From the sequence record MK817115.1: 64,000 nt of DNA, one strand, 5' to 3'. Numbering within the stretch: the first letter of the stretch is position 1; the number at the start of each line of letters is the position of its first letter. A program made the position numbers and the translations under genes. The notes beneath the pieces are model-generated. The model was given only the letters and a program-made list of their open reading frames with translations, searched no databases and was not told the DNA's origin. Shown here piece after piece: positions 1 through 16,475 of the stretch.

Positions 1-2
1 TT

Positions 3-1145
3 ATGTTACCTTTTGCAAGAATGGTTAAGTACGGGAATATTGCACCTGCACAAATCGGTAGATATAAAATATACAGTTCATCTTCTTCACTATTTTTATT
101 GGATACCCAAAAACACAATTTGTACAGTACATCGAACATTAATTATACTAGTGGTACAGGTAATGTTGAGCCTAAATTTGTGTTAAGTGCAACTAATGTT
201 AAAAGATTATTACTATCTGATAATAGTTGTGCAATGCAAATATATGAAGATATGAATGGGCGTGCAGCGATGTGTGGCACAAGAACTGCATATAGTGGGG
301 TTGCAAATGATAATGTACTGGTATGGACGGATTGCACTACATGGTTCACAAATGTAGGGTTGAATGTATCAGATATTCAGTACATGTCTGGTTTTTATAA
401 TCTGAAACTAAACATAGTTATGAATAATGGTGATTTGTGGTGTAGTGGGAAAAACAACACTACTACTATGTCATCATTTGGTAATAGCACAAATATCGAT
501 TCATTCAATCAGTTTACCAAAATAACAACAATATCAAATGTTATTAAAGCCACCGGGAATATATACTTATGTGCAGATAATACTTTATGGGGATGTGGTT
601 TTAACTCTTACTATCAGTTAGGGACAGGTAATCAAACATCCAGTATTAATTTGATTATGATGGCTTCTAATGTTATCGACTGTAATGTTGGTCTTCAAAA
701 TACTTATTACTTGACTAATAATAAAGAACTTTATGGATGTGGTACACAATTTGGTACAACTTACGGGAATGAATTTGGAACAGGAAGGCAGGGAACATCA
801 ATACAATATAAGACTCCTACTATAATTTTCACAAATGCAGATGGTCTGGCTGTTTGTGTCGGTAATATGTCTACTCATGTTATTCAATATGATAAAGTTT
901 TTAGTTCTGGTAATAATGCCCTTGCACAGTTGGGTGTAGGCAACCGTGACAATGTGTACACATATACACAATCATTTGATAATTTCAAAATGGATTCTTC
1001 TATAGTACGTGCAAACGTTGGAACATTGATAATGACAGCGGACAATAAGTTATATTACAGTGGGAGAAATGATGTTGTTATGGGTGGAACAAGCACACAA
1101 TACACGACGGTTTTCAGTGAAGTTAATATGTCATTTATACAATGA
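3..1145 (+). CDS. RCC1/BLIP-II-like beta-propeller, MLPF array member 1
   Basis: 380 aa, MLPFARMVKYGN start, GxNxxxQLGxG repeats (GFNSYYQLGTGN, GNNALAQLGVGN). Confidence 0.75.
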   Translation: MLPFARMVKYGNIAPAQIGRYKIYSSSSSLFLLDTQKHNLYSTSNINYTSGTGNVEPKFVLSATNVKRLLLSDNSCAMQIYEDMNGRAAMCGTRTAYSGVANDNVLVWTDCTTWFTNVGLNVSDIQYMSGFYNLKLNIVMNNGDLWCSGKNNTTTMSSFGNSTNIDSFNQFTKITTISNVIKATGNIYLCADNTLWGCGFNSYYQLGTGNQTSSINLIMMASNVIDCNVGLQNTYYLTNNKELYGCGTQFGTTYGNEFGTGRQGTSIQYKTPTIIFTNADGLAVCVGNMSTHVIQYDKVFSSGNNALAQLGVGNRDNVYTYTQSFDNFKMDSSIVRANVGTLIMTADNKLYYSGRNDVVMGGTSTQYTTVFSEVNMSFIQ

Positions 1146-1150
1146 ATTAA

Positions 1151-1217
1151 TGCCAGTACTTGATACTGGCTTTTCTTTTTTGTATTAAATATAGTATAAT
1201 GAATAAAGGAGGGAATT
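1151..1217 (+). repeat. Array intergenic module: hairpin terminator, TTTGTATTAAATATAGTATAATGAATAA, GGAGG RBS
   Basis: GCCAGTA-CTTGA-TACTGGC plus T-run, then near-invariant core. Confidence 0.9.
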
Positions 1218-2360
1218 ATGTTACCTTTTGCAAGAATGGTTAAGTACGGAAATGAAGCACCAGAACCAAAACCTCTATTTAAAAATAGATTACAAGCAAA
1301 TTATAATACTCGTTTTTATTTGCATGTTAATGGTGACTTGTACTGGTATGGTTCATCTTCATTTGGACAAGGTGGTAATGGTTCATTACAATCATCCACC
1401 GTATGGACCCGTGTGAATAATAATATTGAACGTTACTGGGGTGGTGTTCTTGGTTCCATTGCCATTAAGAATGATGGAACTATTTGGTTCACAGGTGCTA
1501 GTATAGTAATGCCACAAATCGGAACAAATACAAATGGGGTTTGGATTGATGTAACCCAGTACTTCACTGATTTTGGTGTCAGTGCTGATGATATTGATGG
1601 TATTGCTGTTGGACAGAATTTGCGTGTATTTTTGAAAAATGGAAAATGGTTCTACTGTGGTGCTGGCGAGGGTGGTGTATTTGGTAACGCATCAACAGCT
1701 AATGTCACATCGTTCAGATACAGCACTATAGAAAATGTTAAAAGTTATGGCTGTTCTTTGCTCAGTACTGGGTTAGTTCTTGATGATGGTTCCTATTGGT
1801 ATGCAGGAAATACTGTTGCTCCTGGTAGTACAACAACATCAAATATATTAAGTTTTACAAAAGACAATACGATCACCAATGCTATACAAGCTGTAAATAC
1901 ATACCGTACTTCATATATATTTCTTAATGATGGTTCAGTGAAGGTTGCTTCACCAAATGCATATGGTCAAGCTGGTGTAGGTAGAGTATCAGCAGTACCA
2001 ATGAGTACATTAATTCCCAATTTATCATTCCAAGGTGAAATAGAGTTGGTGGGTGGTTTATCCAACAACGAAGGGAATGGATGTGTTGTTAAAAATAATA
2101 ATAAGTTATATACTTGTGGTCGAAATACCTATGGTGCATGTGGTGTTAATCAAACATCCGAAAATATACTAACTTTCACCGAAATGGTTCTTGATGCATT
2201 AGAAGGAAGACGAATTTCAGGCTTCGTAATTGATAATTTCTATTCAATGATAATTGATGAAAATAACAATTTGTATATGAGTGGTTTGGCTGAACTTGGA
2301 AATGTTCCAGCCGTGAGAGTTCCAACCAGAGTCCCCGATTCCCTTCTACCGTGGAAATAA
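1218..2360 (+). CDS. RCC1-like beta-propeller, array member 2
   Basis: 380 aa, shared N-terminus, GRNTYGACGVN and YGQAGVG repeats, GGAGG RBS. Confidence 0.75.
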   Translation: MLPFARMVKYGNEAPEPKPLFKNRLQANYNTRFYLHVNGDLYWYGSSSFGQGGNGSLQSSTVWTRVNNNIERYWGGVLGSIAIKNDGTIWFTGASIVMPQIGTNTNGVWIDVTQYFTDFGVSADDIDGIAVGQNLRVFLKNGKWFYCGAGEGGVFGNASTANVTSFRYSTIENVKSYGCSLLSTGLVLDDGSYWYAGNTVAPGSTTTSNILSFTKDNTITNAIQAVNTYRTSYIFLNDGSVKVASPNAYGQAGVGRVSAVPMSTLIPNLSFQGEIELVGGLSNNEGNGCVVKNNNKLYTCGRNTYGACGVNQTSENILTFTEMVLDALEGRRISGFVIDNFYSMIIDENNNLYMSGLAELGNVPAVRVPTRVPDSLLPWK

Positions 2361-2367
2361 TGTAATA

Positions 2368-2433
2368 TGCCAGTACTTGATGCTGGCTTTTCTTTTTTGT
2401 ATTAAATATAGTATAATGAATAAGGAGGGATTT
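2368..2433 (+). repeat. Array intergenic module
   Basis: Same hairpin, core and RBS. Confidence 0.9.
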
Positions 2434-3543
2434 ATGTTACCTTTTGGAAGAATGGTTAAGTACGGAAATATTGTACCTGGTCCTAAAAATATAATTAAAG
2501 TTGGTGCTTCTACACAAGGTCAATTCTTATTGACTGATTCACATGATTTATATTACATAGGTAGAAATCAAGGTGGTGAATCTGGAAATGGTAATACCAA
2601 CACGGTATCTTCATGGATATTAGTAAGTGCAGATGTTTCTAATTTTTTCGTGGGTGATCGTACACTTGTTATTATTAAAAATGATAATACTATATGGACA
2701 TCAGGTCAAACGTACTGGTTCTCATCTTCTACGACTACTTCTTACAGTACTGTATTAGTTGAAAGGACTAATTGGTTTACTAATGCTATACCAGTCAGTG
2801 AAATTGCTAATATTGTATGTACAAATGGTTTAATATTTGTACTTAGCACTAATTCAGTACTCTATGGTGCAGGAGATAATGGATATCGTGGTTCTTTGGG
2901 TATTGGTTCATCATCAATTTATACATTAACTCAATGTGCTACGAACGTTCGTAAAGTAATGACCAATGCGAATGATAGTATGTATCTTACATTAGATAAT
3001 AAGCTATATAGTTCTGGATGGAATAGTAGTGGGCAGCATGGTACGGGGAACCAAACACAAATTAACACTTGGGGATTGCGTAGTTCTGGTGTAATCGATG
3101 CAGCCATTGGTGGTAATGCATTAAATTACTATAATGGTACATCATATTTCGTATGTGGTCAAACTCCAAACTTTCTTAGTTCAGGTACGACTACATTCCG
3201 TGCAGTTCCTGTAAGTACTTTGCCTAATAGTTCTCCGTTGTTTATGACGAATTCACCTGCATTAAATACTGCTACACAAATGGTAATTACTAGTACATAT
3301 CAAAAGGGTGTTGGGGCGAACCGTGGTTTGGGATTAAACAATTCTCAAACTGGTGCTATATATAGTGCTACCAATTTACAATTACCCGTTGAAGTTAGTG
3401 AGATTAGGGATGTTCTTTTTAGTGATGGTTTGACATCGATATTAACCAAAAATGGAGATGTGTATAGTACTGGATCGTATTACGCCATTCCAGGTGCAAT
3501 CGAGGATGTTGCAGTCTTTACTAAAATTGATTTACCAAAATAA
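2434..3543 (+). CDS. RCC1-like beta-propeller, array member 3
   Basis: Start reassigned to MLPFGRMVKYGN after AAGGAGG; 369 aa; GWNSSGQHGTGN. Confidence 0.75.
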   Translation: MLPFGRMVKYGNIVPGPKNIIKVGASTQGQFLLTDSHDLYYIGRNQGGESGNGNTNTVSSWILVSADVSNFFVGDRTLVIIKNDNTIWTSGQTYWFSSSTTTSYSTVLVERTNWFTNAIPVSEIANIVCTNGLIFVLSTNSVLYGAGDNGYRGSLGIGSSSIYTLTQCATNVRKVMTNANDSMYLTLDNKLYSSGWNSSGQHGTGNQTQINTWGLRSSGVIDAAIGGNALNYYNGTSYFVCGQTPNFLSSGTTTFRAVPVSTLPNSSPLFMTNSPALNTATQMVITSTYQKGVGANRGLGLNNSQTGAIYSATNLQLPVEVSEIRDVLFSDGLTSILTKNGDVYSTGSYYAIPGAIEDVAVFTKIDLPK

Positions 3544-3548
3544 CATAA

Positions 3549-3613
3549 TGCCAGTGCTTGATACTAGCATTCTTATTTGTATTAAATATAGTATAATGAA
3601 TAAGGAGGGAAAT
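3549..3613 (+). repeat. Array intergenic module
   Basis: Same core; hairpin variant GCCAGTGCTTGATACTAGC. Confidence 0.88.
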
Positions 3614-4810
3614 ATGTTACCTTTTGGAAGAATGATTAAGTACGGGAATATTGCACCAGGGCCAAGTCCAGTGGCTTTCTCTGACGTTCTACAACAACAT
3701 TACACAAACTGTATGTATCTACATACACCAACTAATACTTTATATGGTTATGGTAATAATAATTTATGTCAATTAGGTGTTGGGAATCAATCTATAGTTT
3801 CGACATTTACAGTACTTGCAAGGGGTTGTGCAGCCTTTTGGCTCGGTGTTCATGGTTCATTGATGATTGATTTGGATAATAGAATATACTACACTGGTTC
3901 TGGTGCTGCCTTTCCTGATTATGGAGATGCAACACTTGTGAATGGTTTTATGACACAATGGACGGATGTTACTGTTGCATTTAATAAAATTGGTGTTATT
4001 GCTAATATGATCAAGAGTGTACATATAGGTGAGAGTACTAGAATATTATTAACCGATGGTAGAGTAATTGCGTGTGGAAAAAACACTTATGGTGAATGTG
4101 GTTCTGGGAACACAAATGCTATCCCTACACTAACAGTTATGACTGACATGGGTGAAGTTTCTCAACTCGCGTGTTCATTACAGGGTACACACTATCTCAA
4201 AACAAATAAAGACGCATGGTTTTGTGGTAAGGATAATGTTGGTGCAAGTGGTTGTGGTGCTGCTGGTGTTGTACATCTTAATAAACTCGTAACAAGTAAT
4301 GTCGAATATATTAGTGCTACATATGATATAACTTGGTGGTTTATTAGAGGTGGTTATGTATACTATAGTGGTTCTAACTCGTTTGCACAAGCGGGTAATG
4401 GTACATTTTCATCAACTAATCAGCTTAGGCCCACTAGAAACTTAGATCTTGCTTCAATTGTAGTTGATGATAATTTTGTATGTCCTAGTAATATGGGGAA
4501 TAGTTCAATTGGTACACCTATGGCAAAATATGATCCGAATATTAGAAGTGGTGGTGTTAACACATATGGTCAGGAAGGTACAGGAAATAATAATATAGTG
4601 ACGAAGTGGAATACCTTTAACATTAGTGCAATCACTGGAGGATTTGACAATATTCTTATGGCATCTAAAGACTGGTGTAGGACAATAATTATTACTAAAG
4701 ATTACAAAGTGTATGCGTGTGGAGGATTTAATGGTTCTGGTGGTATCTTACCAGATGGTACTTATGCTATTAAAACATTAACATTAATGCCAACACAACA
4801 ATGGCAATAA
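3614..4810 (+). CDS. RCC1-like beta-propeller, array member 4
   Basis: Start reassigned to MLPFGRMIKYGN; 398 aa; GNNNLCQLGVGN, GKNTYGECGSGN. Confidence 0.75.
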   Translation: MLPFGRMIKYGNIAPGPSPVAFSDVLQQHYTNCMYLHTPTNTLYGYGNNNLCQLGVGNQSIVSTFTVLARGCAAFWLGVHGSLMIDLDNRIYYTGSGAAFPDYGDATLVNGFMTQWTDVTVAFNKIGVIANMIKSVHIGESTRILLTDGRVIACGKNTYGECGSGNTNAIPTLTVMTDMGEVSQLACSLQGTHYLKTNKDAWFCGKDNVGASGCGAAGVVHLNKLVTSNVEYISATYDITWWFIRGGYVYYSGSNSFAQAGNGTFSSTNQLRPTRNLDLASIVVDDNFVCPSNMGNSSIGTPMAKYDPNIRSGGVNTYGQEGTGNNNIVTKWNTFNISAITGGFDNILMASKDWCRTIIITKDYKVYACGGFNGSGGILPDGTYAIKTLTLMPTQQWQ

Positions 4811-4822
4811 TAGGAGAAAATA

Positions 4823-5992
4823 ATGTTACCTTTTGGAAGAATGATTAAGTACGGAAATATTGCACCAACACCACCGAAATTTAAAAAAATACTCGCCAAT
4901 AACTACAACGTTGCAGTTTTAACAAGCAGTGGGGATTTATATGTACGTGGGAATAATCAAAACGGTCAATTGGGTTTAGGTCACAAAGAAACAGTTACTA
5001 CATGGACGATTAGCACTTCTGGTGTTCAAGATTTTTGGTTTGGTAGTTCATCACTAGTGGTTAAGAAAACCGATGATGAAATATGGTACAGTGGGCAGTC
5101 AACTACAATTGGTATGCCAGGGGCATCCGTGTCAGTGTGGACTTCTGCCATGCCGACATTCAATACATTAACATTACCAATATTAGATATGGCAGTTAGT
5201 AATCAGACTACAAGTGTATTACTATCTGACCGAACAATATGGAGTAGTGGGGTAGGAAGCAATGGTCAATTGGGTAATGGAACTGCGACGAACAACATTT
5301 CAGGTAAATTCGTCCAAAGTACTGTTTCAACAGAAGAAGATCAATTACCAGTTAAATTGTTTGCCAGTAATTTAATGCATGGATATGTTACGTCGAACGG
5401 CTGGTTATACTACACTGGGCAACCCAATGCAGTTAGCACTAATGGCAGTGCGATATATAGTGTTTATACTAGTGCTCCTATTAGTCTAAGGAATTCCATT
5501 AATATCAAGTACTATACAAATAATGGAACTTCGATGGCGATGGCTATTGGTACAGATCCAAATGGCAAGACCGTAATTGCTAATGGCGGCCCTAGGATAT
5601 TTGGTGCACAGGCTGATGGAGTAAATGGTCAACTAAGTAATGTTAGGTCATTTGCTGTTCAAACCGAATCACTAATGCCACCAGGTGATGTAGTAAGTAT
5701 TGCTCATAATACTTCATATTATAACCAAGTTATTGCTACAACAGATGGTATATATTGTTGCGGCTACAACCGATCTACACAAGCTGGTATGTTAGGCATT
5801 GGTACATCTACTAACGCATTAGTATATACCAAAGCAATCGTACCTGATGGTTTTGATTATAGTAAATCGCAAATGGTAGGTGGGTATAACCGTACTTATA
5901 TAACTGATGGTAATTTTGTATATAGTGCTGGGACAGATGTCACATATGGTGGCGTTAGTAGCTTAGAATTTGTATTAGATTCACCAGTTTAA
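4823..5992 (+). CDS. RCC1-like beta-propeller, array member 5
   Basis: 389 aa; GNNQNGQLGLGH, GVGSNGQLGNGT; only an AGGAG RBS upstream, no full module. Confidence 0.78.
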   Translation: MLPFGRMIKYGNIAPTPPKFKKILANNYNVAVLTSSGDLYVRGNNQNGQLGLGHKETVTTWTISTSGVQDFWFGSSSLVVKKTDDEIWYSGQSTTIGMPGASVSVWTSAMPTFNTLTLPILDMAVSNQTTSVLLSDRTIWSSGVGSNGQLGNGTATNNISGKFVQSTVSTEEDQLPVKLFASNLMHGYVTSNGWLYYTGQPNAVSTNGSAIYSVYTSAPISLRNSINIKYYTNNGTSMAMAIGTDPNGKTVIANGGPRIFGAQADGVNGQLSNVRSFAVQTESLMPPGDVVSIAHNTSYYNQVIATTDGIYCCGYNRSTQAGMLGIGTSTNALVYTKAIVPDGFDYSKSQMVGGYNRTYITDGNFVYSAGTDVTYGGVSSLEFVLDSPV

Positions 5993-5997
5993 ATATA

Positions 5998-6062
5998 TGC
6001 CAGTACTTGATACTGGCATTCTTATTTGTATTAAATATAGTATAATGAATAAGGAGGGAATT
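5998..6062 (+). repeat. Array intergenic module
   Basis: Same hairpin, core and RBS. Confidence 0.9.
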
Positions 6063-7253
6063 ATGTTACCTTTTGCAAGAATGATGAATTATGGGAATAT
6101 TGTGCCTGTACCACTACAAATTAAGAAAATAATACCAACTGATACTGATGTTGTTGTACTTTATACTGATGGTCAACTATACGCACGAGGCAGTAATAGT
6201 TTTGGGAAGTTTGGTAGAGGAAATAATAATGCAGTAAGGTCGTGGACATTAATTAGAGAAAATGTCAAAGATTGCTGGATGACACAAGGAACTTTGTTAG
6301 TTCAAGATAAGGACTTAAATTATTTTTATTGTGGATATGGTAGTCATATTGGTTTAGAAACTAGTACTACATCATTTTTAAGTTATAACCAATATATTGA
6401 AAATTTGTACACACAAAGTTCAAGTACTTCAATTAAACAGATGTATGCAGGTACTACGTGGTTTACTTTCTTAATGGATAATAATACAATATGGAGTACA
6501 GGGTGGAATAGTGCTAGACAATTCGCAGATGGTACAGGAACTACTTATCAAATATCAGATGGTTCATTTGTTAAAGCGGTAACACCAGATGTAGATATTG
6601 CACAAATACAGTCAACAAATTACTGTGTAATGTTTTTTGATACACAAAATAATTTATATATTGGTGGTAGTACATCTGGCATAAGTACTAGTACCACATG
6701 GACACCATTTAATGAATATACTTTGTATAAGCCAAGTACCACATATACAAAAACATTACAATATACTGGTTGTTCAATTGGTGCTGTCAGTGCTTTAGTA
6801 GAGAATCCAAGTACAGGAGCACGTCAGTTCCTAGTAGGTGGTAACGCTAATAATGGGGCATGGGGTAATAACACTACGAATAGTACAGCACTAGCAGTAT
6901 TAGGGAATAATAGTACTACATTACCATCAGGAACTTATTATTCAATCCATACTGGATATGCAGCACAATCTAGTATACTAGTTACGAGTACAGGTGTATA
7001 TGCAACTGGTTTAAATGCGAGTGGTTATGCTGGTACATTAGGTGTTGGTTCTAATGTTACTATTGGTAGATTTACTATATGTCCAATGCCAGCAGAAATA
7101 TCATATTCTATGTATGATAAAATAAAAATATATCGCGGTTCGTATCGTACTTTTCTAACTGCTGATATGAAAAATATATATTCAACCGGAACGTATGATG
7201 ATGGTGGACCTAGTACAAATAGATATGTTCTGGATACACCTAGACAATTGTAA
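6063..7253 (+). CDS. RCC1-like beta-propeller, array member 6
   Basis: Start reassigned to MLPFARMMNYGN; 396 aa; GSNSFGKFGRGN. Confidence 0.75.
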   Translation: MLPFARMMNYGNIVPVPLQIKKIIPTDTDVVVLYTDGQLYARGSNSFGKFGRGNNNAVRSWTLIRENVKDCWMTQGTLLVQDKDLNYFYCGYGSHIGLETSTTSFLSYNQYIENLYTQSSSTSIKQMYAGTTWFTFLMDNNTIWSTGWNSARQFADGTGTTYQISDGSFVKAVTPDVDIAQIQSTNYCVMFFDTQNNLYIGGSTSGISTSTTWTPFNEYTLYKPSTTYTKTLQYTGCSIGAVSALVENPSTGARQFLVGGNANNGAWGNNTTNSTALAVLGNNSTTLPSGTYYSIHTGYAAQSSILVTSTGVYATGLNASGYAGTLGVGSNVTIGRFTICPMPAEISYSMYDKIKIYRGSYRTFLTADMKNIYSTGTYDDGGPSTNRYVLDTPRQL

Positions 7254-7260
7254 TAATTTC

Positions 7261-7324
7261 GCCAGTACAAAGTACTGGCTTTCTTATTTGTATTAAATAT
7301 AGTATAATGAATAAAGGAGGAAGT
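7261..7324 (+). repeat. Array intergenic module
   Basis: GCCAGTAC-AAA-GTACTGGC plus core. Confidence 0.9.
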
Positions 7325-8059
7325 ATGTTACCTTTTGGAAGAATGGTAAAGTACGGGAATAAAATTGAATATAAGCCAGATGGTGAACAATTAATCACGA
7401 CAATAGGAACAACACAATTTACAGTTCCTGCTGGCGTTACCGAAATATCAGTATGTGTTATTTCGCCGGGTGGTCAACGTGGTGCTGGTGGCGGCTTATC
7501 GTGGCGTAATAATATTCCGGTTACTAGTGGTGAGTACTTAAGTGTTTCTCTTACACATCCCAACACTACTACAGCAGTTGAAAACGGTTTATATCGTGGA
7601 ACTGAAAAACTATGTGTTAGCTTCACTGGTGAATATAGGGTTGGTGGACTAGGTGGGAAAGCTGCTAACGCTATTAATGATGGTGGTGGTAATGGGGGCA
7701 ACGCTGGTGTAAGTGGTGGTGCAGTCATTGGTGGTGGTGCTGGTGGCTACACTGGTAAAGGTGGTAACGGAGATGCAATCACTGGTGAAAATGGTGCTGG
7801 CGGCGGCGGTGGTGGTGCATTCTATAATACCTCGTTCATTGGTACGGGTGGTGGTACTGGTATCATTGTTCAAGGTGCTAATGGTATTGGCGGTAGATAC
7901 GATGGTTCATATAATGGTGGTGCTGGTAGTGGTGGTGCTGGTAAGATGTATGGTGGTGGTGGTAGTATATGGGATAATTTTTCTTATACGGCTGCTGGTG
8001 GTGGTGCTGTGCGAATAATATGGGGACGTGGGAGATATTATCCTAACAATTCAGTCTAA
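7325..8059 (+). CDS. Glycine-rich protein carrying the MLPF N-terminal tag (array member 7), resembling tail-fibre-associated Gly-rich domains
   Basis: MLPFGRMVKYGN then FTVPAGVTEISV..GG..GAGGG and many GGxG motifs; no RCC1 repeats; 244 aa. Confidence 0.65.
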   Translation: MLPFGRMVKYGNKIEYKPDGEQLITTIGTTQFTVPAGVTEISVCVISPGGQRGAGGGLSWRNNIPVTSGEYLSVSLTHPNTTTAVENGLYRGTEKLCVSFTGEYRVGGLGGKAANAINDGGGNGGNAGVSGGAVIGGGAGGYTGKGGNGDAITGENGAGGGGGGAFYNTSFIGTGGGTGIIVQGANGIGGRYDGSYNGGAGSGGAGKMYGGGGSIWDNFSYTAAGGGAVRIIWGRGRYYPNNSV

Positions 8060-8066
8060 AATATAG

Positions 8067-8131
8067 GCCAGTACTTTGTACTGGCTTTCTTATTTGTATT
8101 AAATATAGTATAATGAATAAGGAGGGGAATT
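8067..8131 (+). repeat. Array intergenic module
   Basis: GCCAGTAC-TTT-GTACTGGC plus core. Confidence 0.9.
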
Positions 8132-9283
8132 ATGTTACCTTTTGGAAGAATGGTTAAGTACGGGAATATTGCACCAGTTCCAGTAGTTCCTACAATAAAA
8201 GATTTTAAGATTGGCTTTTCACATGAAGTGTTATTGGACAGTGAAGGTGATGTGTGGGGTATTGGATATAATACCGCTGGTCAGTTGGGATTTCTGGACG
8301 CTAACACAAATTCAATAGGAATGTGGTCTAAGATACATGAGAATGTTAGATTAATTGGCGTTACTACCAATTATACTGTAGTTGTTACAAATGATAATAG
8401 AATACTTTACGCCGGAAATAACTTAATTTCTAGTACTACAACGCTTGGGTGGAACGATATAACGTCTAGTATGGGAGCGGTTGTAGTGGATAGCATCGAT
8501 GCATTATATTGCACAGATGGCATGATGCATATTAAAACTGCTGATGGTTCTTTATACGCATATGGACGTAATATGAACGCAAACGCTGGAGTTACTGGTG
8601 TTTCTGGAGTTATTAGTGTTGCAACTAAAGTTAGTGGTTTACCATCGGCTGTGAAAGATATACGATATACGTTTAGTTATGGTACAGTACTATGTCAATT
8701 AGATACCACCTCGGTATATGGATGGGGAAGAAATGTCAATGGTGAATTAGGTCAGGGGAACGCAGCCGCAGTTCCTACCCCATCCCAAAGGGCGGGTGCT
8801 TCTATTGCTATAGGTACTTCGTATAATGCTACTGCAATTGTTTCCGGTACTGCATCGTTGGTTACATGTGGTGGACAAAATGATGGTCAGTTAGGTAATG
8901 GTATTACTACTGCTGGTAATGTATACACATATGGTGCTAGAGCATACCCAAGCGATCTTAATAATATAAGAAGTCCAGTGGATTGCAGTACAACTTATAC
9001 ATCTGCATTTATGAGTCCAGATGGCATATATTACACGGGTTCGAACCGAAGTGTGTTTGGTGGTCCGAGCGGGGCTGCCACTGTTGCATTATATACCAAA
9101 TGTAGTGATTTACCAATATTATATTCTAATATAACACAGTGGTGTAGTGGTACTATTGGTGGTGCGATATGTAGCAGTACTGAATTATATCAGTGTGGGA
9201 CCGGTAGATACATTGCCGGAGATGGGCAGAACGCAACTAGGTATGGGTTTAGAAAGACACCATTACCTTGGGATGTTTATTGA
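8132..9283 (+). CDS. RCC1-like beta-propeller, array member 8
   Basis: 383 aa; GYNTAGQLG, GRNVNGELGQGN, GQNDGQLGNG. Confidence 0.78.
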   Translation: MLPFGRMVKYGNIAPVPVVPTIKDFKIGFSHEVLLDSEGDVWGIGYNTAGQLGFLDANTNSIGMWSKIHENVRLIGVTTNYTVVVTNDNRILYAGNNLISSTTTLGWNDITSSMGAVVVDSIDALYCTDGMMHIKTADGSLYAYGRNMNANAGVTGVSGVISVATKVSGLPSAVKDIRYTFSYGTVLCQLDTTSVYGWGRNVNGELGQGNAAAVPTPSQRAGASIAIGTSYNATAIVSGTASLVTCGGQNDGQLGNGITTAGNVYTYGARAYPSDLNNIRSPVDCSTTYTSAFMSPDGIYYTGSNRSVFGGPSGAATVALYTKCSDLPILYSNITQWCSGTIGGAICSSTELYQCGTGRYIAGDGQNATRYGFRKTPLPWDVY

Positions 9284-9289
9284 CATAAA

Positions 9290-9355
9290 GCCAGTACTCA
9301 AGTACTGGCATTTCTTTTTGTATTAAATATAGTATAATGAATAAAGGAGGAATTT
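9290..9355 (+). repeat. Array intergenic module
   Basis: GCCAGTACT-CA-AGTACTGGC plus core. Confidence 0.9.
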
Positions 9356-10531
9356 ATGTTACCTTTTGCAAGAATGGTTAAGTACGGGAATGTTAAACCA
9401 GCACCTTCGGGTGTACTGAAGATTGCTACATCTACAACACATGTGGGTATGTTGTTCGATAGTGGCAATTTATATCTACGTGGTAATGGTGCACAATATA
9501 GGCTAGGAAATGATAGTACTGCGTATTTACAAAATGGATGGATACAGTGTCCATATAAAGTTGCTAATGTTTGGTGTTTATCCGCAGGGACCATTATACT
9601 TACGACTGAAGGAGAATTTTACTTAGCAGGACAAATGGGATACCTTGGTGTGGTCAAATCGCCTGTTCCAGGATGGACAAATATTACATCAATATTGTCT
9701 ACAATACCAAGCCTTACTACAGTTCAAGATATAGCTTCTACTGAGACTGTCGCTTCAAATGGTACTTTATTAATTATGTTAAGCAATGGTGATTTATACG
9801 GGATAGGTAGTAATACTGGAGGTGAACTGGGTGTTTCTGGTGCAAAAGCGACACCGATTAAGATTGATACTGGTGTTACTATGATTGCTGGTACACACTT
9901 TGGTGGTGCTTTACATTATGTTAAAAATGGTCAATATTACAGATGTGGTAATAACGCAAGTTATAACCTAGGTACAAGTGCATCTAAACTATCCACATTT
10001 ACAGTAAGTACTGATATATCTGGAACAGTTATTGGTATTTCATGTACTAATTTGACGACTTCAGTACTTACATCGAATAAGGGTAATATTAGAGTATATA
10101 CTGCTGGGATAAACACTGATTATTGTTTAGGAATTGGGTATGGAGACACGAAGGTTACAATGAGTCCATTTAGTGCTACTCCCGAAATTAGTGGTATTAT
10201 ACCAGATGCTGGGTCGATGAACAATCACAGTTTGAATTATTTTATAATGGCAATGACACAGAATGGTAAACTTTATACATGTGGTAGTGGTGTTCCTCTT
10301 GGTTGGCCTGTTACTACTGCATCAGAAAGATCTTATTACCACCAGGTACAATATGAGGATATGGATGTTGCACCAGATGTTAATGCATTTTCAGTACAAG
10401 GTGGTTCTGGTGTGTTATACGCGTTAGTGGGGACTAATGAGGTGTACTGGTGTGGTAACGGGTCTATGTTTCAGGAACAGAGTCCAGGTACACAACAAGT
10501 TACAATGAAGAAATTGGTACTACCTGAATAA
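9356..10531 (+). CDS. RCC1-like beta-propeller, array member 9
   Basis: 391 aa; GSNTGGELGV; closest in sequence to member 12. Confidence 0.75.
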   Translation: MLPFARMVKYGNVKPAPSGVLKIATSTTHVGMLFDSGNLYLRGNGAQYRLGNDSTAYLQNGWIQCPYKVANVWCLSAGTIILTTEGEFYLAGQMGYLGVVKSPVPGWTNITSILSTIPSLTTVQDIASTETVASNGTLLIMLSNGDLYGIGSNTGGELGVSGAKATPIKIDTGVTMIAGTHFGGALHYVKNGQYYRCGNNASYNLGTSASKLSTFTVSTDISGTVIGISCTNLTTSVLTSNKGNIRVYTAGINTDYCLGIGYGDTKVTMSPFSATPEISGIIPDAGSMNNHSLNYFIMAMTQNGKLYTCGSGVPLGWPVTTASERSYYHQVQYEDMDVAPDVNAFSVQGGSGVLYALVGTNEVYWCGNGSMFQEQSPGTQQVTMKKLVLPE

Positions 10532-10573
10532 AGGCACGAAATGTGTTTAGAAAGACACTATTAATTAACATAA

Positions 10574-10639
10574 TGCCAGTACTTGATACTGGCATTTCTT
10601 TTTGTATTAAATATAGTATAATGAATAAAGGAGGGATTT
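10574..10639 (+). repeat. Array intergenic module
   Basis: Same hairpin, core and RBS. Confidence 0.9.
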
Positions 10640-11819
10640 ATGTTACCTTTTGCAAGAATGGTTAAGTACGGGAATATAGCACCTATATATGAATCTAGTG
10701 TAATTAAAATGCAAGCACCATCGGCTTTTACCAACAACACATTGATGATTCTGTATAAGAACGGTGATTTGTGGGGTATTGGCGGTAACAATGCTGGTAT
10801 ATTCGGTCTTGGAAATACAACGACACAGACCAAATGGGTTCGCTTAATGCAAAATGTGAAAAATTTTTGGTGCACAAGGAATGCTTCATATAGCTTAGTT
10901 CAGACCAATGATAATAAATTTTATTATGCAGGTTGGAACCTTTGGACTGGTACATCTAGTGCAGTTCAAAGTACTACATTTGTTGATTGTACGTCTTATT
11001 TTTCAGGTTTTAATGTGGATAATATCAAGGAGATATATCCAAATGTTCGTAATATGTTTTTACTAACAAATGATAGTGTTCTTTACGCAATAGGTGATAA
11101 TTCGACCTATGAGTTGGGTAGTAGTTCATCTACACTTACATCATTTACACAGGTTAATATTAATGTTAAAAAGGTTAGTTCATTTTTCAATAGTCCGACT
11201 TGGATAATTAAAAATGATAATTCAGTATGGCGATGTGGTAAAACTAGTACTGGTACATTGTTAACTGGTTCTGCTACTGATACTTTGACGAGTTGGACAA
11301 AGTATAGTTTTCCTACAGGCCAGTACCCCGTTGATATAATTTCATATAACAATATGTTGGGTATAGTTCTTAATGTAGATAATACTTATCCGCTATATGG
11401 TGTAGGGTCACAAAATTCACGGACAATTAGGAAATGGTGTTCTATCTAATACTAATAAGATATCTTTAACGCCACAAAGTACTTATTTACAATTAACTAA
11501 TGTTTCCGATTTTGAATTTATACAAACATATTCACAAAATCCTAGGGGATTATTATATAGAAATGGAAGTCGTATTTTTGGAACAGGGTATAATAATTAT
11601 GGACAGCTTGGTAACAATTCATCTAATAATGCTTCAATTTTCGTCCAAGCACAATTTCCAAATTCTGTAGTTTATGATCCGTCAACATCGTTGGTTGCTG
11701 CGAATGACAATGCATTATTTGCATATGTGAATGGGAAATTATACTACACTGGTATGTCTCCAGTAGGGACAGTTGTTGGTACATGGACTTTAACTGAATA
11801 CCAATTGCCACAAATTTAA
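10640..11819 (+). pseudogene. Array member 10, split by a 1-nt frameshift near 11418
   Basis: ORF stops at 11449, but GQLGNG...GYNNYGQLGN...YQLPQI* continues in the adjacent frame to TAA at 11817-11819; could be a sequencing error. Confidence 0.7.
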
Positions 11820-11829
11820 GGAGGAATTT

Positions 11830-12939
11830 ATGTTACCTTTTGCTAGAATGGTTAAGTACGGAAATATTGCACCTGAAGCTCCAAAGATAAAGAAAGTACT
11901 GTGCGGTCTTGATAATTTGTACGTCCTCTATGGCGATGGCTCACTTTATGGTTGTGGGGTTAATACGTATTTGCAGTTAAACGTTGAAAATACAGCAACA
12001 AGAAATACTTGGATATTAATTTCAGAAGGTGTTACTGATGCATGGGCTGGTGCGTACAATATTCTTTATCTCAAGGGTGAAGAATTCATAATGCATGGAG
12101 TTACCACACAATTAGGCACAGGAAATACTATGATTCCGTTGGGTGGTTTGAATGTTACTTCTTCATTTCCACATATATCTAATATTAAAATGATATCAAT
12201 TGGTGCAGATACAATGCACTACGTTGATGCTAGTGGTTCGATTGTTTATGGTAGAGGCATGAATGGTAACTATTCACTCGGTGGTGGGTATTCCACGGCT
12301 CAGAGTACTTTTGTTTCAGTTATTAATACCGGAGCTAATACAGTTCTTGATATATTGGGTACACAGAATAACACATTAATATTAACATCAAATAATGAAC
12401 TTCTCGGTTGCGGGAGCAGTGGGTATGGTTCACTTGGCGTAAGTCCAGGACAGTATACTACACTAGTAAGCAGGTTAACAAGTGTTAAACTATTTGGTGG
12501 TAACAGTACTGGTACTCTTGCTTATTCAGCCAGCAATATATACAACGCAGGTTGGCAGTATATTGGTCAACTTGGTAACGGTATTACAACGAACACACAA
12601 GTATATCCATTTGCATTTAACTCCACTACTATTGATAGTAAGATACATAAAATATCAAAATCAAGTGCGACTTCATATGTTAATATGTACGCAACAACCG
12701 AAGGAAAGATATACAGTACTGGTGAATTTGGTAGAAATGGTTCGGGAGGTGGTTTGAGTAGATTCACCAATACACTAACTTTAGATAATTACAACCCAGA
12801 AAAATCAGCATTATACACATGTGCACATTTTAGTATAGTATTTGATGGTAATAATCAAATTTATGCTTGTGGTTCTTTTTTGTATGTGCCAGGTCCTATT
12901 ACCACGAACTCATGGTCTGCAATTACAATGCCGAAATAA
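11830..12939 (+). CDS. RCC1-like beta-propeller, array member 11
   Basis: 369 aa; GWQYIGQLGNG; only an RBS upstream. Confidence 0.75.
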   Translation: MLPFARMVKYGNIAPEAPKIKKVLCGLDNLYVLYGDGSLYGCGVNTYLQLNVENTATRNTWILISEGVTDAWAGAYNILYLKGEEFIMHGVTTQLGTGNTMIPLGGLNVTSSFPHISNIKMISIGADTMHYVDASGSIVYGRGMNGNYSLGGGYSTAQSTFVSVINTGANTVLDILGTQNNTLILTSNNELLGCGSSGYGSLGVSPGQYTTLVSRLTSVKLFGGNSTGTLAYSASNIYNAGWQYIGQLGNGITTNTQVYPFAFNSTTIDSKIHKISKSSATSYVNMYATTEGKIYSTGEFGRNGSGGGLSRFTNTLTLDNYNPEKSALYTCAHFSIVFDGNNQIYACGSFLYVPGPITTNSWSAITMPK

Positions 12940-12952
12940 TACTATAAAACTA

Positions 12953-13019
12953 TGCCAGTACTCGATACTGGCTTTCTTATTTTGGATTAAATATAGTATA
13001 ATGAATAAAGGAGGGAATT
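12953..13019 (+). repeat. Array intergenic module
   Basis: Same hairpin; core TTTGGATTAAATATAGTATAAT. Confidence 0.9.
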
Positions 13020-14189
13020 ATGTTACCTTTTGGAAGAATGTTAAAGTACGGAAATATTAAACCAACTCTTCCTGAAATAAAGAAATTGGATGGTAGTCAA
13101 TTACATGTCGGATTACTTTATAGTACAGGGAATATGTACATGCGTGGTTCTGGTTCGAACTATAAATTAGGTACAGGGGATGCTAGTGATGTATTAGGTG
13201 GTTGGGTACATGTACCCTATGAAGTTGATGATTTTTGGGCGTGTGTATCCGGTACATTAATAAAGACTGTTGATAATAAATTATATTGTGCAGGTCTATA
13301 CATGGGTGGATATTTTGGGGCTAGTGGTTCATATGTTAACTGGACTGAAGTAACTTCATTATTTGTAGGTATTGACGTGTCGCAAATAAAGAATATAGAA
13401 TTTACGTCAGCGGGGACTTCCGGTAGTACACTAATATTGATGTTAGATGGTCGTTTATATGGGTTCGGTATGAACAGTAGATCTGAGTTAGGTGTTAATA
13501 ACAAAGTTGTATCTCCCATTCTTATAGATACTGAGGTAAGTGCAATAGGAGCACATAAGTTAGGCGGTTCATCGTTCCATTATATAAAAGGCGGTAAGTA
13601 CTACAGATGTGGAACATCGGTTGGTAGTAATATTGGAAGTTCTTCTTTAACTACTTTTACGGTATTGAGTATTCCTGATAACGTTATATCTATGCAAATA
13701 TTATATGACAACGTACAGTTATTATGTTTAGGAAGTTCTGGATATAGTATCTATATGGCTGGTTCTAATGATTATGGTGGAAGAGGTGTTGGTGGTTCTA
13801 CTGTTTACACTACATTCAGGAAAATAGATCTTACAGGATTTGGTGTTGTTCCCAGTGAAATACTATTTGAAAATGCTGGAAATGGTTATGTTAATATATC
13901 AACTGATAGTACTGGGGTATATACATGTGGTGGTGGGGCTGGTGTTAATGGTTTAGGTAGACCAACTGATGTGATACCAAGTTCACAGTTGGGTTCGGTT
14001 CAGTTCAGTACTGGAGTAGAACCATCAAATATAAGTCGTGTGTATTCACAGAGTTCGAGTTCTGTTATATATTGTATAGTTAATAATGAATTGTACTGGG
14101 CTGGTAGTAATTCATATTTTACTGATCAAACCACAAATACTGGTACACAATTTTCATTTATTAAGATGAAGGATATGCCTTCTGCTTAG
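13020..14189 (+). CDS. RCC1-like beta-propeller, array member 12
   Basis: 389 aa; MLPFGRMLKYGN; GMNSRSELGV. Confidence 0.75.
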   Translation: MLPFGRMLKYGNIKPTLPEIKKLDGSQLHVGLLYSTGNMYMRGSGSNYKLGTGDASDVLGGWVHVPYEVDDFWACVSGTLIKTVDNKLYCAGLYMGGYFGASGSYVNWTEVTSLFVGIDVSQIKNIEFTSAGTSGSTLILMLDGRLYGFGMNSRSELGVNNKVVSPILIDTEVSAIGAHKLGGSSFHYIKGGKYYRCGTSVGSNIGSSSLTTFTVLSIPDNVISMQILYDNVQLLCLGSSGYSIYMAGSNDYGGRGVGGSTVYTTFRKIDLTGFGVVPSEILFENAGNGYVNISTDSTGVYTCGGGAGVNGLGRPTDVIPSSQLGSVQFSTGVEPSNISRVYSQSSSSVIYCIVNNELYWAGSNSYFTDQTTNTGTQFSFIKMKDMPSA

Positions 14190-14194
14190 ATTTT

Positions 14195-14261
14195 ATGCCA
14201 GTGCCTTGTACTGGCATTTTTTTGTCCTAAATATAATAACGATTTACATTTGGAGGATACA
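14195..14261 (+). repeat. Degenerate array module before member 13
   Basis: Hairpin ATGCCAGT..ACTGGCAT plus T-run; core reduced to CTAAATATAAT; GGAGG. Confidence 0.7.
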
Positions 14262-14685
14262 ATGCTACCCTTTCGAAGAATTATCACATCATCAAAACAG
14301 AACATACAACCTTCTGTAACAAAAATAGCTTCATCTGATACAACAGTTTTTGCCCTTATGTCAGATGGTACGTTGTACAGTAGAGAATCTCAAGAGTTTG
14401 GGTTATTCATATTTTTCTAATCATATTATAACTTCATTGGGTGTTTACGCAACTGGTAATAACACAGGCGATAACGCAGGTCAATTGGGTATAGGTACAC
14501 AAACAGATGTGTCGGCCTATACCAAATGTGTACTACCAATAGAGATGAATATGAATAACGTATATGTTACAGCAACTTTATACAGAACTTACTTAACCGA
14601 TGGTATACAAATTTACAGTACTGGACAATATATTACAGACGGTGGAGTTGCCAGTACTGTATTTGTTAAAGATTCACCATTTTAG
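14262..14685 (+). pseudogene. Array member 13, internally deleted and frameshifted
   Basis: MLPFRRIITSS...DGTLYSR (stop 14420) joined out of frame to a C-terminus (GQLGIGT...YRTYLTDG..YSTG...DSPF) that matches members 5 and 6. Confidence 0.7.
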
Positions 14686-15328
14686 GAATATTGTACAAAG
14701 TGTATGCAGTTATTTTAGAACTCTTTTTAAATTCATCATAGAGAAAATTCAAAATTCTGGAGCATTCAATATACTTTTCAATATCTTTATGGATTAATGA
14801 GTACTGAAACATTAAATCAGATGATATAGTGTAGGTACTACCTTTTAAACTGTTTAAAATATCACAGATTTCAGGGTTTACTGGTACTTCGTCAAAATTA
14901 TCATCTAAAACATTTATTTCAAAATCAAAGCTATCTTTGTTTTTGATTAATTTGATAATAGAATCACCATAAACATTATATTGTTTTAATGGATTTACTA
15001 CAATGTTAAAAAGATTGGATGTATTACAATCAATATCCATAAAGTATGTATTATCATTGTACTTAATATTGAAACATCCGTACTCAATAAAATCACCAGG
15101 AGTTATTGATGAGTTTCTTCTCGTTTCAACATAAGAAGCTTTAATTTTGTTTTTATGTAAAAGAGTAATAAATTTCTTAGACTGTTTAGCACCAGCTAAG
15201 TAAGTATTATAACTTGGTCTTTTAAAGATTATAGGACTAGACTTCTCGCCAGAGAAATATTTTTTTATAAATTTACGTTGTTTAACAAAATAGTTTTTAT
15301 AAAACAAACCTAATTTTGATTTCATCAT
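14666..15328 (-). CDS. Hypothetical protein, EExxFQxS-type C-terminal motif variant
   Basis: 220 aa, AGGAG RBS, ISSDLMFQYSLIHKD. Confidence 0.7.
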   Translation of the reverse strand: MMKSKLGLFYKNYFVKQRKFIKKYFSGEKSSPIIFKRPSYNTYLAGAKQSKKFITLLHKNKIKASYVETRRNSSITPGDFIEYGCFNIKYNDNTYFMDIDCNTSNLFNIVVNPLKQYNVYGDSIIKLIKNKDSFDFEINVLDDNFDEVPVNPEICDILNSLKGSTYTISSDLMFQYSLIHKDIEKYIECSRILNFLYDEFKKSSKITAYTLYNIPKMVNL

Positions 15329-15340
15329 AACTCCTTATAC

Positions 15341-15368
15341 ATCCAGTACTATTAAGTACTGGATTTTT
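15341..15368 (+). terminator. Hairpin built from two AGTACT sites, T-run on the + side
   Basis: ATCCAGTACT-ATTA-AGTACTGGAT-TTTT. Confidence 0.6.
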
Positions 15369-15369
15369 A

Positions 15370-15741
15370 TTATGACATACGCTTATTATGAATGGAATTA
15401 TGAATGGATTTTAAATAATTATATAATTTTATCAATCCACTACCAGTAGCTACAAACAGTAGTGCTGTTGGTATCATACATCCAAACATGGTTATTAATT
15501 CATGTATTTCCATACCATCACTATTTGGTCCCACATCAAATATAACAACCAAAACAACACCTAAAATGCTTAGACAATAATATCCCATAAAGACCATAAA
15601 AGTGATATATCCGGCACTTGATTTAATATTACATAACATATTATACACTGGATTAATACAGAAGAAGTATAATAACCATACCAGTGTTCCAGTACTGAAC
15701 ATAATAATTGAAATAATGGAAAATATCTCACGGTAACTCAT
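15370..15741 (-). CDS. Small 3-TM membrane protein, paralogue cluster A
   Basis: 123 aa, three hydrophobic segments, basic C-terminus. Confidence 0.75.
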   Translation of the reverse strand: MSYREIFSIISIIMFSTGTLVWLLYFFCINPVYNMLCNIKSSAGYITFMVFMGYYCLSILGVVLVVIFDVGPNSDGMEIHELITMFGCMIPTALLFVATGSGLIKLYNYLKSIHNSIHNKRMS

Positions 15742-15742
15742 A

Positions 15743-16105
15743 TTATTTCCTCATACCCAAACGTTGGTGGATTTCAGAGATCTTTATATACAATAGTACC
15801 ACAAGGTGCAGTACTAAACAACATATAATTACGGCTAATACCAATGAACATATCATAAGACCGAAGGTTATTGTATTCAAAGAGGATGTGAACAGTCCAA
15901 TTATTAATACAATAAAACCAAAATTGAATACTGTACCCAACACAGTATATGCTGGACTATATCTCTTTTGGATTACATCATATATATTTGATAATGGTCG
16001 CTTATGGAAGTACTTCCCAATGCACACGAATGCATTCAGTGAGAAGATAAATGTATACGCCATTACTAGTAATTGACCAACGAAAGATAATTCTATCCCG
16101 TTCAT
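15743..16105 (-). CDS. Small 3-TM membrane protein, cluster A
   Basis: Start moved to MNGIELSF (GAGG RBS), 120 aa. Confidence 0.7.
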   Translation of the reverse strand: MNGIELSFVGQLLVMAYTFIFSLNAFVCIGKYFHKRPLSNIYDVIQKRYSPAYTVLGTVFNFGFIVLIIGLFTSSLNTITFGLMICSLVLAVIICCLVLHLVVLLYIKISEIHQRLGMRK

Positions 16106-16106
16106 A

Positions 16107-16475
16107 CTAACCTCGTTTACGTTTTTTAATTGTACTGTGCATCTTTTCGAAATAGGGAACCAAAACATATTGAACAGTTTGCCAGATAACCATTAGATTA
16201 TGCACTGCACCACCAAGGATACCAAACACTAGAACAATAATTGCCATAATAGGATCACCGTCTACCATACCCCATTTAAAGATATGTAAAATCCAAGCAA
16301 TGACTAGACAAAATAAACTAAGCCAATACGTAATGAAAAATCCGGCTTGTAATTCATAATCATCAGCAATTTCATCGTATACCGTTTCTAAAAATGATAC
16401 ACAAAAGAATTTACCAATTATAACCACAGTACTAATAAACAGCATAGCAGTTAAGATAATAAGAGCAATTTCCAT
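16107..16475 (-). CDS. Small 3-TM membrane protein, cluster A
   Basis: 122 aa, hydrophobic, coupled stop/start. Confidence 0.75.
   Translation of the reverse strand: MEIALIILTAMLFISTVVIIGKFFCVSFLETVYDEIADDYELQAGFFITYWLSLFCLVIAWILHIFKWGMVDGDPIMAIIVLVFGILGGAVHNLMVIWQTVQYVLVPYFEKMHSTIKKRKRG

Follow-up and report, generated by a model that had tools for sequence, protein, structure and literature searches.

Organization of the array

We analyzed a window comprising bases 1-64000 of the genome of Escherichia phage vB_EcoM_phAPEC6, a Rak2-like jumbo myovirus of the genus Asteriusvirus (MK817115.1, 352,598 bp). Its first part is occupied by a tandem array of genes that share a short N-terminal peptide, here called the tag, in front of variable protein bodies, here called the payloads. 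The array has 13 units, all on the + strand, between window positions 3 and 14685, namely 12 tagged genes with open reading frames (ORFs) of 244-398 residues and a remnant as the 13th. The same count had been given in an earlier note made from the letters of the window alone, and it was borne out by the pattern ATGTTACCTTTTGSAAGAATG, which has 12 matches in the window, all on the + strand (positions 3, 1218, 2434, 3614, 4823, 6063, 7325, 8132, 9356, 10640, 11830 and 13020), against 0.01 in shuffled sequences. The proteins of the 12 tagged genes start with MLPF(A/G)RM(V/I/M/L)(K/N)YGN, and unit 13 starts with MLPFRRI (at 14262). The array forms a + strand island with positive GC skew, flanked on both sides by long blocks of minus-strand genes.

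The window begins at the boundary of the GenBank record. The true start of the array is gp549, which lies one gene earlier, upstream of the record origin, giving 14 units in total. Window positions 1-2423 match the end of the record (its last 2423 bp, 350176-352598) at 100% identity, so that genes 1 and 2 of the window equal gp550 and gp551. We rejected a real tandem duplication of these two genes, because the copy is exact over 2423 bp, lies at the record boundary and lacks the ribosome site (GGAGG) of gene 1 at the join. Such a duplication was also absent from the loci of phages SP27, 121Q, G17 and PBECO4. It is probably an untrimmed assembly (circularization) overlap, which would leave a genome of about 350,175 bp in which gp550 and gp551 were counted twice. 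In addition, the GenBank annotation omits three full cassettes (2434-3543, 6063-7253 and 7325-8059), starts gp002 from an upstream ATG at 3506 and thus reads through a junction module (3506-3613), and places gp004 (7716-8018) as an out-of-frame ORF within cassette 7. The products of the omitted cassettes were therefore undetectable by the published mass-spectrometry search.

For comparison, the homologous locus was taken from five other Asteriusvirus genomes, and the tagged proteins were clustered at 75% identity or more into types designated by letters (lower-case letters and O-Z for the rarer ones). Cassette 1 (type P, 3-1145) encodes a tagged RCC1-like propeller of 380 residues, identical to gp550 at the record end. 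The following junction module (1146-1217) has a terminator hairpin, a T-run, the promoter-like block TATTAAATATAGTATAAT and GGAGG. Tagged RCC1-like propellers are also encoded by cassette 2 (type K, 1218-2360; gp001, the same as gp551, which is found in virions), by cassette 3 behind the module at 2361-2433 (type B, 2434-3543; 369 residues, absent from the annotation) and by cassette 4 behind the module at 3544-3613 (type E, 3614-4810; gp002). Cassette 4 is joined to cassette 5 (type N, 4823-5992; gp003, a tagged RCC1-like propeller found in virions) by a 12-nt junction without a module (4811-4822). The module at 5993-6062 marks the start of a 97.8%-identical block common to phAPEC6 and SP27 and precedes cassette 6 (type C, 6063-7253), an unannotated tagged RCC1-like propeller of 396 residues. 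Cassette 7 (type F, 7325-8059), between the modules at 7254-7324 and 8060-8131, is the non-propeller unit: its unannotated product of 244 residues consists of the tag, a putative beta-sandwich and a glycine-rich domain.

The propellers resume with cassette 8 (type G, 8132-9283; gp005, seven-bladed, in virions), the module at 9284-9355 and cassette 9 (type H, 9356-10531; gp006, in virions), both products being tagged and RCC1-like. The next module (10568-10639) has 36 nt of extra spacer ahead of it. Cassette 10 (type I, 10640-11829; gp007 and a remnant) is RCC1-like but frameshifted near 11410, and no module follows it. Its 269-residue N-terminal product is found in virions, the remaining blades continue in the +1 frame to 11816 (reading GHKIHGQLGNG), and the break with the 269-residue truncation is retained in SP27, 121Q and G17. 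This cassette may be a conserved pseudogene, a tolerated truncation or a case of programmed frameshifting. Cassette 11 (type J, 11830-12939; gp009) and, behind the module at 12948-13019, cassette 12 (type L, 13020-14189; gp010) again encode tagged RCC1-like propellers found in virions. The last module (14190-14261) is decayed, with the hairpin and T-run retained, the promoter block diverged (CCTAAATATAATAACG) and then GGAGG. It leads to cassette 13 (type D, 14262-14685), a remnant with the decayed tag MLPFRRI. Cassette 13 is internally deleted: about 50 N-terminal residues are followed by a frame break and by about 110 C-terminal residues, corresponding to blades, in the ORF 14350-14685. The type D remnant also closes the array in SP27, 121Q, G17 and PBECO4.

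The junction module

The full module of 70-73 nt is present at nine junctions, and the copy before gene 13 is decayed, so that the ten junctions to which the earlier note assigned the module are reduced to nine with a full copy. In order, it comprises the hairpin GCCAGTAC-loop-GTACTGGC (-6 to -14 kcal/mol), a T-run, TGTATTAAATATAGTATAATGAATAA and GGAGG at 5-6 nt before the ATG. It is absent at two junctions, 4811-4822 and the one preceding 11830. The 102-nt unit of module and tag (-66 to +36) shows a mean pairwise identity of 87.7%, while the 102 nt on its downstream side average 33% and those on its upstream side 30%. An Rfam scan of positions 1-15400 gave no match at E <= 0.1, and the conserved junction thus corresponds to no known RNA in that collection. 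Terminator-like sites number 19, against 6.3 expected. Hairpins with the core of the array terminators, CCAGT(A/G)C...G(T/C)ACTGG, also occur outside the array at 15341-15364 and 44024-44042, so this core seems to be a general terminator motif of phAPEC6 rather than an array-specific one.

The promoter-like part holds a perfect TATAAT but no -35 element at 16-18 nt, the best candidate being CTGGCA paired with TATAGT. A sigma-70 promoter scan of the region was not enriched (82 found, 77 expected from shuffles) and gives no support for an early promoter. On the other hand, TAAATA-type motifs lie 16-45 nt upstream of the virion genes gp035c, 037c, 238, 242, 245, 250c, 253 and 256, and a late sigma factor is annotated in phAPEC6 (gp237c). 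The module's TATTAAATA resembles these motifs, and gp250c carries the same ATTAAATA. The T4 late-promoter motif TATAAATA was found at only two sites in the window (28783 and 29432), both on the minus strand. They precede gp035c and gp037c by 40-48 nt, and these two genes encode virion proteins within an otherwise early-looking minus-strand block. Moreover, TAAATA-N4-5-TATAAT is conserved among phAPEC6, phage EJP2, the metagenomic relative L010 (run SRR10097269) and CBB_552 of phage CBB. We therefore read the module as a putative terminator, late promoter and ribosome site, the late class being suggested by the fit of TATTAAATA to the TAAATA motifs upstream of virion genes.

The shared N-terminal tag

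The tag has the 12-residue consensus M-(L/I)-P-F-x-R-x-x-x-Y-G-N and is followed by a short, often proline-rich linker. Since a word-indexed search with gp005 yielded no more than 11 homologues, most of them orthologues, the family alignment was built from the paralogues and the fetched loci. In this 23-member alignment, 12 columns are invariant and seven of them lie in the tag (M1, P3, F4, R6, Y10, G11 and N12).

Not only the peptide but also its codons are nearly fixed in phAPEC6, in agreement with the synonymous conservation pointed out in the earlier note. TTA, CCT and AGA are each used in 13/13 copies, AAG in 12/12 and TAC in 12/13, against 27-44% in the gene bodies (Leu TTA 44%, Pro CCT 27%, Arg AGA 41%, Lys AAG 33%, Tyr TAC 28%). 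Similarly, the glycine of the tag is GGR in 13/13 copies and never GGT, the codon of 64% of glycines in the bodies. Synonymous variation resumes from codon 15. In L010, nine genes start with M(I/L)PFARMLEYGN, but their synonymous sites vary at nearly every codon and most of their junctions lack the module. The tag peptide is likewise kept while the codons vary in EJP2 and CBB. These facts point to selection on the peptide, with the codon identity of phAPEC6 as an additional effect at the DNA level.

The tag was also sought in IMG/VR, with a strict degenerate pattern and then with a relaxed back-translated one. The strict pattern matched phage 121Q only. The relaxed pattern retrieved 38 tagged ORFs, all on Rak2-like contigs of 109-378 kb, including CBB, GAP32 and 121Q. 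All matches in the whole 121Q genome fall in this array.

Profile searches placed the one tag on four unrelated folds, namely RCC1 propeller, Kelch propeller, LamG/ConA-like and glycine-rich domains. In the AlphaFold models of gp005 and gene 7, residues 1-20 lie outside the fold with a predicted local distance difference test score (pLDDT) of 47-69, which indicates that the tag is not a blade strand. The idea that the tag is simply an integral first blade of the propeller, named in the earlier note as a refuting condition, is thus not supported. The tag is missing from payload relatives in other phage groups. In Clostridioides phages, the alignment of RCC1 homologues begins only at residue 19-30, that of LamG homologues in rV5-like phages begins at residue 14-22, and glycine-rich homologues outside Rak2-like phages have different N-termini. 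Judged from sequences and models, the tag appears to be a portable, fold-independent peptide, a flexible extension kept by selection.

These results bear on a plainer explanation, in which the genes are ordinary tandem paralogues arisen by duplication and divergence, the constant start reflects optimal translation initiation or a folding need, and detection in virions reflects sticky, abundant late proteins. Tandem paralogue arrays are indeed common in these phages (Hua 2017), and selection on the start of the mRNA is in line with the codon identity that phAPEC6 shows over the first 36 nt. However, the same peptide on four unrelated folds is not expected of a duplication relic, and the peptide is constant where the codons vary in L010, EJP2 and CBB.

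As a side observation, homologues of the gene 7 glycine-rich domain on many unrelated phage contigs (P0016-P0037 and others) show a recurring N-terminal M-(I/L)-E-(L/M/A)-(L/M) of tag-like length, which may be another lineage's N-terminal address. In the one context examined, a 150-kb contig (L030), it belongs to a single gene beside the terminase, without an array.

Exchange of cassettes among related phages

The order of cassettes differs among the six genomes. It is A P K B E N C F G H I J L D in phAPEC6, O E B M A C F G H I J L D in SP27, A K B M C F Q G H I J D in 121Q, e E B N A K C F H f I L D in G17 and E B M A C R G S T D in PBECO4. EJP2, with U B V A W X Y Z J a b c O d, is mostly different from the others. 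Type A opens the array in two phages and stands at the fourth or fifth place in the other four, and several types are unique to one phage.

The borders of the exchanged segments coincide with the repeated unit. When phAPEC6 was compared with its relatives, every block of nucleotide homology (identity of at least 88%) starts 12-99 nt before an ATG, and the blocks end 20-48 nt past the next ATG, inside the shared module and tag. The exceptions among the ends are blocks that continue into the conserved flanks of the array and two blocks that fall short of the next ATG, by 25 and 110 nt. Even the short module-less junction has been an exchange point: the cassette behind E is N in phAPEC6, whereas SP27, G17 and PBECO4 have B in that position, which places the exchange within the stretch of Shine-Dalgarno sequence and tag. 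EJP2 has its own version of the module, with a different hairpin and then TTGTAAATACATTATAAT, which is nearly uniform at 10/14 junctions, including those beside cassette types shared with other phages. The modules thus evolve in concert within a genome.

From this comparison of genomes, the cassettes have very probably been exchanged by recombination at the module or the tag, and this reshuffling of order and content at unit borders again argues against simple tandem duplication. The earlier note had proposed such recombination and had named the comparison of array order among relatives as a test that could refute it; the differing sets and orders, with block ends at module or tag, agree with the proposal. 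Its suggestion of homogenization at the DNA level also fits, since the modules are genome-specific yet uniform and the tag codons are fixed in phAPEC6 but variable in L010.

Its description of the array as integron-like holds only as a loose analogy. As in integron arrays, tandem exchangeable single-gene units are separated by repeated junction elements, and the content varies between close relatives. On the other hand, no attC-type site was recognized, the 7-10 bp hairpin being a predicted terminator, and each unit has its own promoter-like block and putative terminator instead of one common promoter. No integrase (IntI-type) is annotated within 30 kb on either side of the array, where the flanking ORFs were not all profile-scanned. 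The exchange fits homologous recombination. phAPEC6 encodes RecA-like and other recombination proteins, so that a site-specific integrase would not be needed.

With regard to the DNA unit, the nearest known system is that of the promoter-early stem-loop (PeSL) cassettes of T4-type phages (Arbiol et al., 2010, PMC2839356; Comeau et al., 2014, PMC4122927). Like PeSL, the module is predicted to be a repeated short intergenic block of stem-loop terminator, promoter and Shine-Dalgarno sequence ending at the start codon, and its copies delimit insertions, deletions and replacements between close relatives via recombination. PeSL elements, however, have a sigma-70 early promoter with a -35 element and flank non-essential early ORFans, whereas the phAPEC6 block has no -35 element, is late-like with TAAATA and accompanies virion genes. 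Moreover, the shared homology of phAPEC6 extends into the first 36 coding nt, and its units all stand in one array of a Rak2-like jumbo phage.

Payload domains

The payloads of the 13 window units are eleven RCC1-like propellers, one glycine-rich domain that may resemble a fiber head and one remnant. The paralogue bodies are only 22-35% identical as proteins, except for one pair at 54%. The RCC1-type identity of the propellers, which the earlier note had recognized from their repeats, was confirmed by profiles and structures. PF00415 and/or PF13540 (RCC1, RCC1_2) scored above cut-off in 8/9 propeller cassettes scanned, though the RCC1-like domain model PF25390 scored 60-106 bits, under its cut-off of 150 bits. 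The AlphaFold model of gp005 (pLDDT 88.8; predicted template-modeling score, pTM, 0.87) is a seven-bladed propeller, and Foldseek matched it to UVR8, RPGR, HERC2 and RCC1 (E 1e-20 to 1e-15; template-modeling (TM) score 0.63-0.77). The description of all payloads as beta-propellers was nevertheless too narrow. It suits most units, but not the glycine-rich gene 7, and profile searches found Kelch and Laminin_G_3 payloads (LamG/ConA-like; phrog_6011, 'virion structural protein') in relatives. For the LamG, Kelch and RCC1 payloads, the alignments fall in the C-terminal portion of long PHROGs named 'virion structural protein'.

Databases and the literature list these genes as 'regulator of chromosome condensation' or 'DNA condensation protein', and the proteins might accordingly be factors that condense DNA or organize chromosomes. 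The Pfam RCC1 repeat matches and the structural similarity to RCC1 agree with such names, and a role as organizers of the inner body was suggested for phAPEC6 (Wagemans 2020, PMC7247149). However, the name derives from one eukaryotic member of a general binding-scaffold fold, and gp005 is structurally closest to UVR8 and RPGR, with 17-19% identity. Kelch, LamG and glycine-rich payloads also occur at this locus behind the same tag, and the sequences vary extremely even where phages are otherwise near-identical, which would be unusual for a core DNA-packing factor. We regard a condensation function as very improbable. With RCC1-like repeat proteins (UVR8, RPGR, the RCC1-like domains of HERC2, BLIP-II), the phage proteins share the seven-bladed propeller and the G-x-N-x-x-G-Q-L-G repeats. 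They differ as components of viral particles with an added N-terminal tag, at 14-20% identity to solved structures. The chromatin or nucleotide-exchange name is inherited from the fold, and the sequence points neither way.

Gene 7 leads in another direction. Its homologues carry PF21722, and its AlphaFold model (pLDDT 93.1) gave as the top PDB match in Foldseek the Pam3 tail fiber gp24 (7ypx_A; probability 0.96, E = 9e-4, TM 0.27), followed by the Bxb1 tail tip. A sequence search of PDB with gene 7 gave no matches, so these leads come from the fold search only. In Pam3 gp24, a docking helix is combined with a TNF-like domain and with a glycine-rich domain that binds the receptor (PMC9608196). 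In its model, gene 7 looks like a Pam3 gp24-like head in which the docking helix is replaced by the tag. [quoted passage not shown]

The general arrangement also recalls the anchors of branched fibers and tailspikes (CBA120 TSP1-4; RaK2 gp526-534, PMC10253068), in which a conserved N-terminal docking part is combined with a variable distal receptor-binding part. However, trimeric fibers carry those anchors as folded domains of about 30-300 residues, whereas the shared part of phAPEC6 is a 12-residue peptide predicted to be disordered, stands on at least four globular folds and is coupled to a shuffling unit at the DNA level. In the RaK2 branched-fiber paper (PMC10253068), the N-terminal anchors are likewise folded domains, and this peptide is not described.

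Association with virions

The published virion proteome of phAPEC6 (Wagemans 2020, PMC7247149) lists gp003, 005, 006, 007, 009, 010, 549 and 551. Thus, 8/10 distinct annotated tagged proteins are in virions, against 62/551 proteins overall (hypergeometric p = 6e-7). In CBB, which belongs to a different genus, all nine of CBB_536, 537 and 548-554 start with MLPF, and seven of the nine were detected in its virion proteome with coverage up to 51% (Buttimer 2017, PMC5259590). The enrichment there is p <= 4e-5, taking 83 as an upper bound of virion proteins. These data indirectly favor the suggestion of the earlier note that the tag is a docking signal for the virion. Taken with the sequence evidence from several independent directions, they make it likely that the tag is a virion-incorporation signal. 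The low peptide counts in phAPEC6 might still be read as contamination by sticky late proteins, as the explanation by ordinary paralogues assumes. Given enrichment in two independent virion proteomes and the coverage reached in CBB, together with the fold and shuffling evidence above, we consider that explanation quite improbable.

Where the payloads reside in the particle is a separate question, and we give slightly less than even credence to their display on the outside. An external role is suggested by the payload folds, which resemble lectins and receptor-binding heads, by the match of gene 7 to the Pam3 fiber, by the alignment to C-terminal parts of structural PHROGs and by the hair-like fibers on the capsid and tail of phAPEC6, 121Q and CBB (phAPEC6: PMC7247149).

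On the other hand, the tag could be a capsid-targeting sequence like that of the T4 internal proteins, with the payloads inside the head, in the inner body or ejected from it, and acting in the host, for example by blocking host defense proteins. In T4, the targeting peptide suffices to bring foreign proteins into the particle (PMC3012670). There, too, a short N-terminal peptide is the sole common feature of otherwise unrelated, fast-evolving virion proteins. The presence of tagged proteins in virions, the inner body in phAPEC6 and 121Q, and a T4-type prohead core protease (gp227c), annotated and found in the virion, are all in line with an internal role. However, the T4 peptide directs proteins to the scaffolding core and is removed by the prohead protease, whereas the tag, judged from the encoded sequences, has no conserved Glu or other fixed cleavage position within or after it, and its residue 9 varies (K, E, Q, S, T, D, V, N). 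The payloads resemble external binding heads (LamG, Kelch, RCC1 and the putative glycine-rich fiber head), and homologous domains in other phages stand at the C-termini of long structural proteins. In addition, rigid 40-kDa propellers would hardly pass the tail tube. An internal location and action is, on balance, unlikely. As for the peptide, then, the nearest known systems are the T4 capsid-targeting sequence and the anchor domains of fibers.

Genomic neighborhood

Next to the array, positions 15370-17809 (minus strand) contain six to seven paralogues of small hydrophobic membrane-protein-like products (104-141 residues), and a comparable run of 'putative membrane proteins' (CBB_539-547) adjoins the tagged genes of CBB. 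This neighborhood is therefore conserved between the two phages. The CBB tagged genes (L028, CBB 350196-355464) directly precede a 22-kb terminal repeat, and in several relatives (the records of GAP32, BF and the pEa_SNUABM phages) tagged genes lie at the extreme ends of the deposited records. The array thus adjoins a physical or conventional genome end across the group. Further along in the window, gp019c (18713-20599, minus strand; 628 residues), annotated as exonuclease ABC C subunit, has within it a stretch of about 45 residues that is repeated in tandem almost exactly (FKIKANEVHNNLYNYDKVDYVNSSTKVLITHPVYGDFWQTP...).

Discussion

The best overall explanation of the locus, to which we give somewhat more belief than doubt, is a late-expressed array of exchangeable virion-protein cassettes, in which the tag would serve as an address and the payloads as accessory binding heads. 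Each unit would consist of a regulatory block (terminator hairpin with T-run, TATTAAATA-N5-TATAAT promoter-like sequence and Shine-Dalgarno sequence), the 12-residue tag with its linker and a payload of ligand-binding type. According to the genome comparison, the regulatory block and the tag, together about 100 bp, are the sole DNA common to the cassettes, and homologous recombination within this stretch very probably reorders, replaces, adds and drops cassettes while keeping the block uniform in each genome. At the sequence level, the tag is selected as a peptide independent of the payload fold. From the published proteomics, it probably acts as an address that takes any payload into the virion, presumably via a common site on a structural protein. 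Finally, and least certainly, the payloads may stand outside as accessory adhesin heads, plausibly on the hair-like fibers of phAPEC6, 121Q and CBB, so that each phage would carry a different, readily swapped set of surface binders.

A bolder form of this explanation, which we offer as a tentative possibility, is that in Rak2-like 'hairy' jumbo phages the 12-residue peptide is a universal plug that non-covalently loads any of dozens of interchangeable lectin-like heads (RCC1, Kelch, LamG, glycine-rich) on the fibers of capsid and tail, the DNA of the plug together with the late promoter-terminator block being the recombination site for head swapping. A single unit of roughly 100 bp would then link the docking of proteins with the shuffling of genes, as a natural plug-and-play system of display.

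Several facts weigh against the explanation that we favor. gp550 and gp002 are tagged yet undetected in phAPEC6 virions, and the peptide counts there are low, 1-5 per protein. The published mass spectrometry shows association with the particle and does not resolve location; phAPEC6 and 121Q contain the inner body mentioned above, so that an internal location is also compatible with these data. GAP32 has tagged genes but is not reported to be hairy, and the TM score of the match between gene 7 and the Pam3 fiber is low (0.27). As to expression, the promoter class is assigned by motif, the perfect TATAAT could serve the host sigma-70, and the sigma-70 scan was not enriched. The near-identity of tag codons in phAPEC6 could also partly reflect selection on the translation start region.

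In the searchable literature, including the proteome papers of phAPEC6 and CBB, we found no description of the shared N-terminus, the cassette unit or the shuffling, the genes being filed under chromosome or DNA condensation as noted above. A late-gene array of a jumbo phage in which one short peptide stands on four folds and its coding DNA belongs to the unit of recombination thus appears to be undescribed there. The array is a clear case of diversification of putative virion surface proteins driven by recombination, unlike diversity-generating retroelements or domain swaps of tail fibers. If the tag is a virion address, it would explain how many unrelated accessory proteins are incorporated into these particles and would point towards the composition and role of the hair-like fibers. 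In that case, the short peptide might also serve to attach foreign proteins to a very large phage particle or to bring them inside it.

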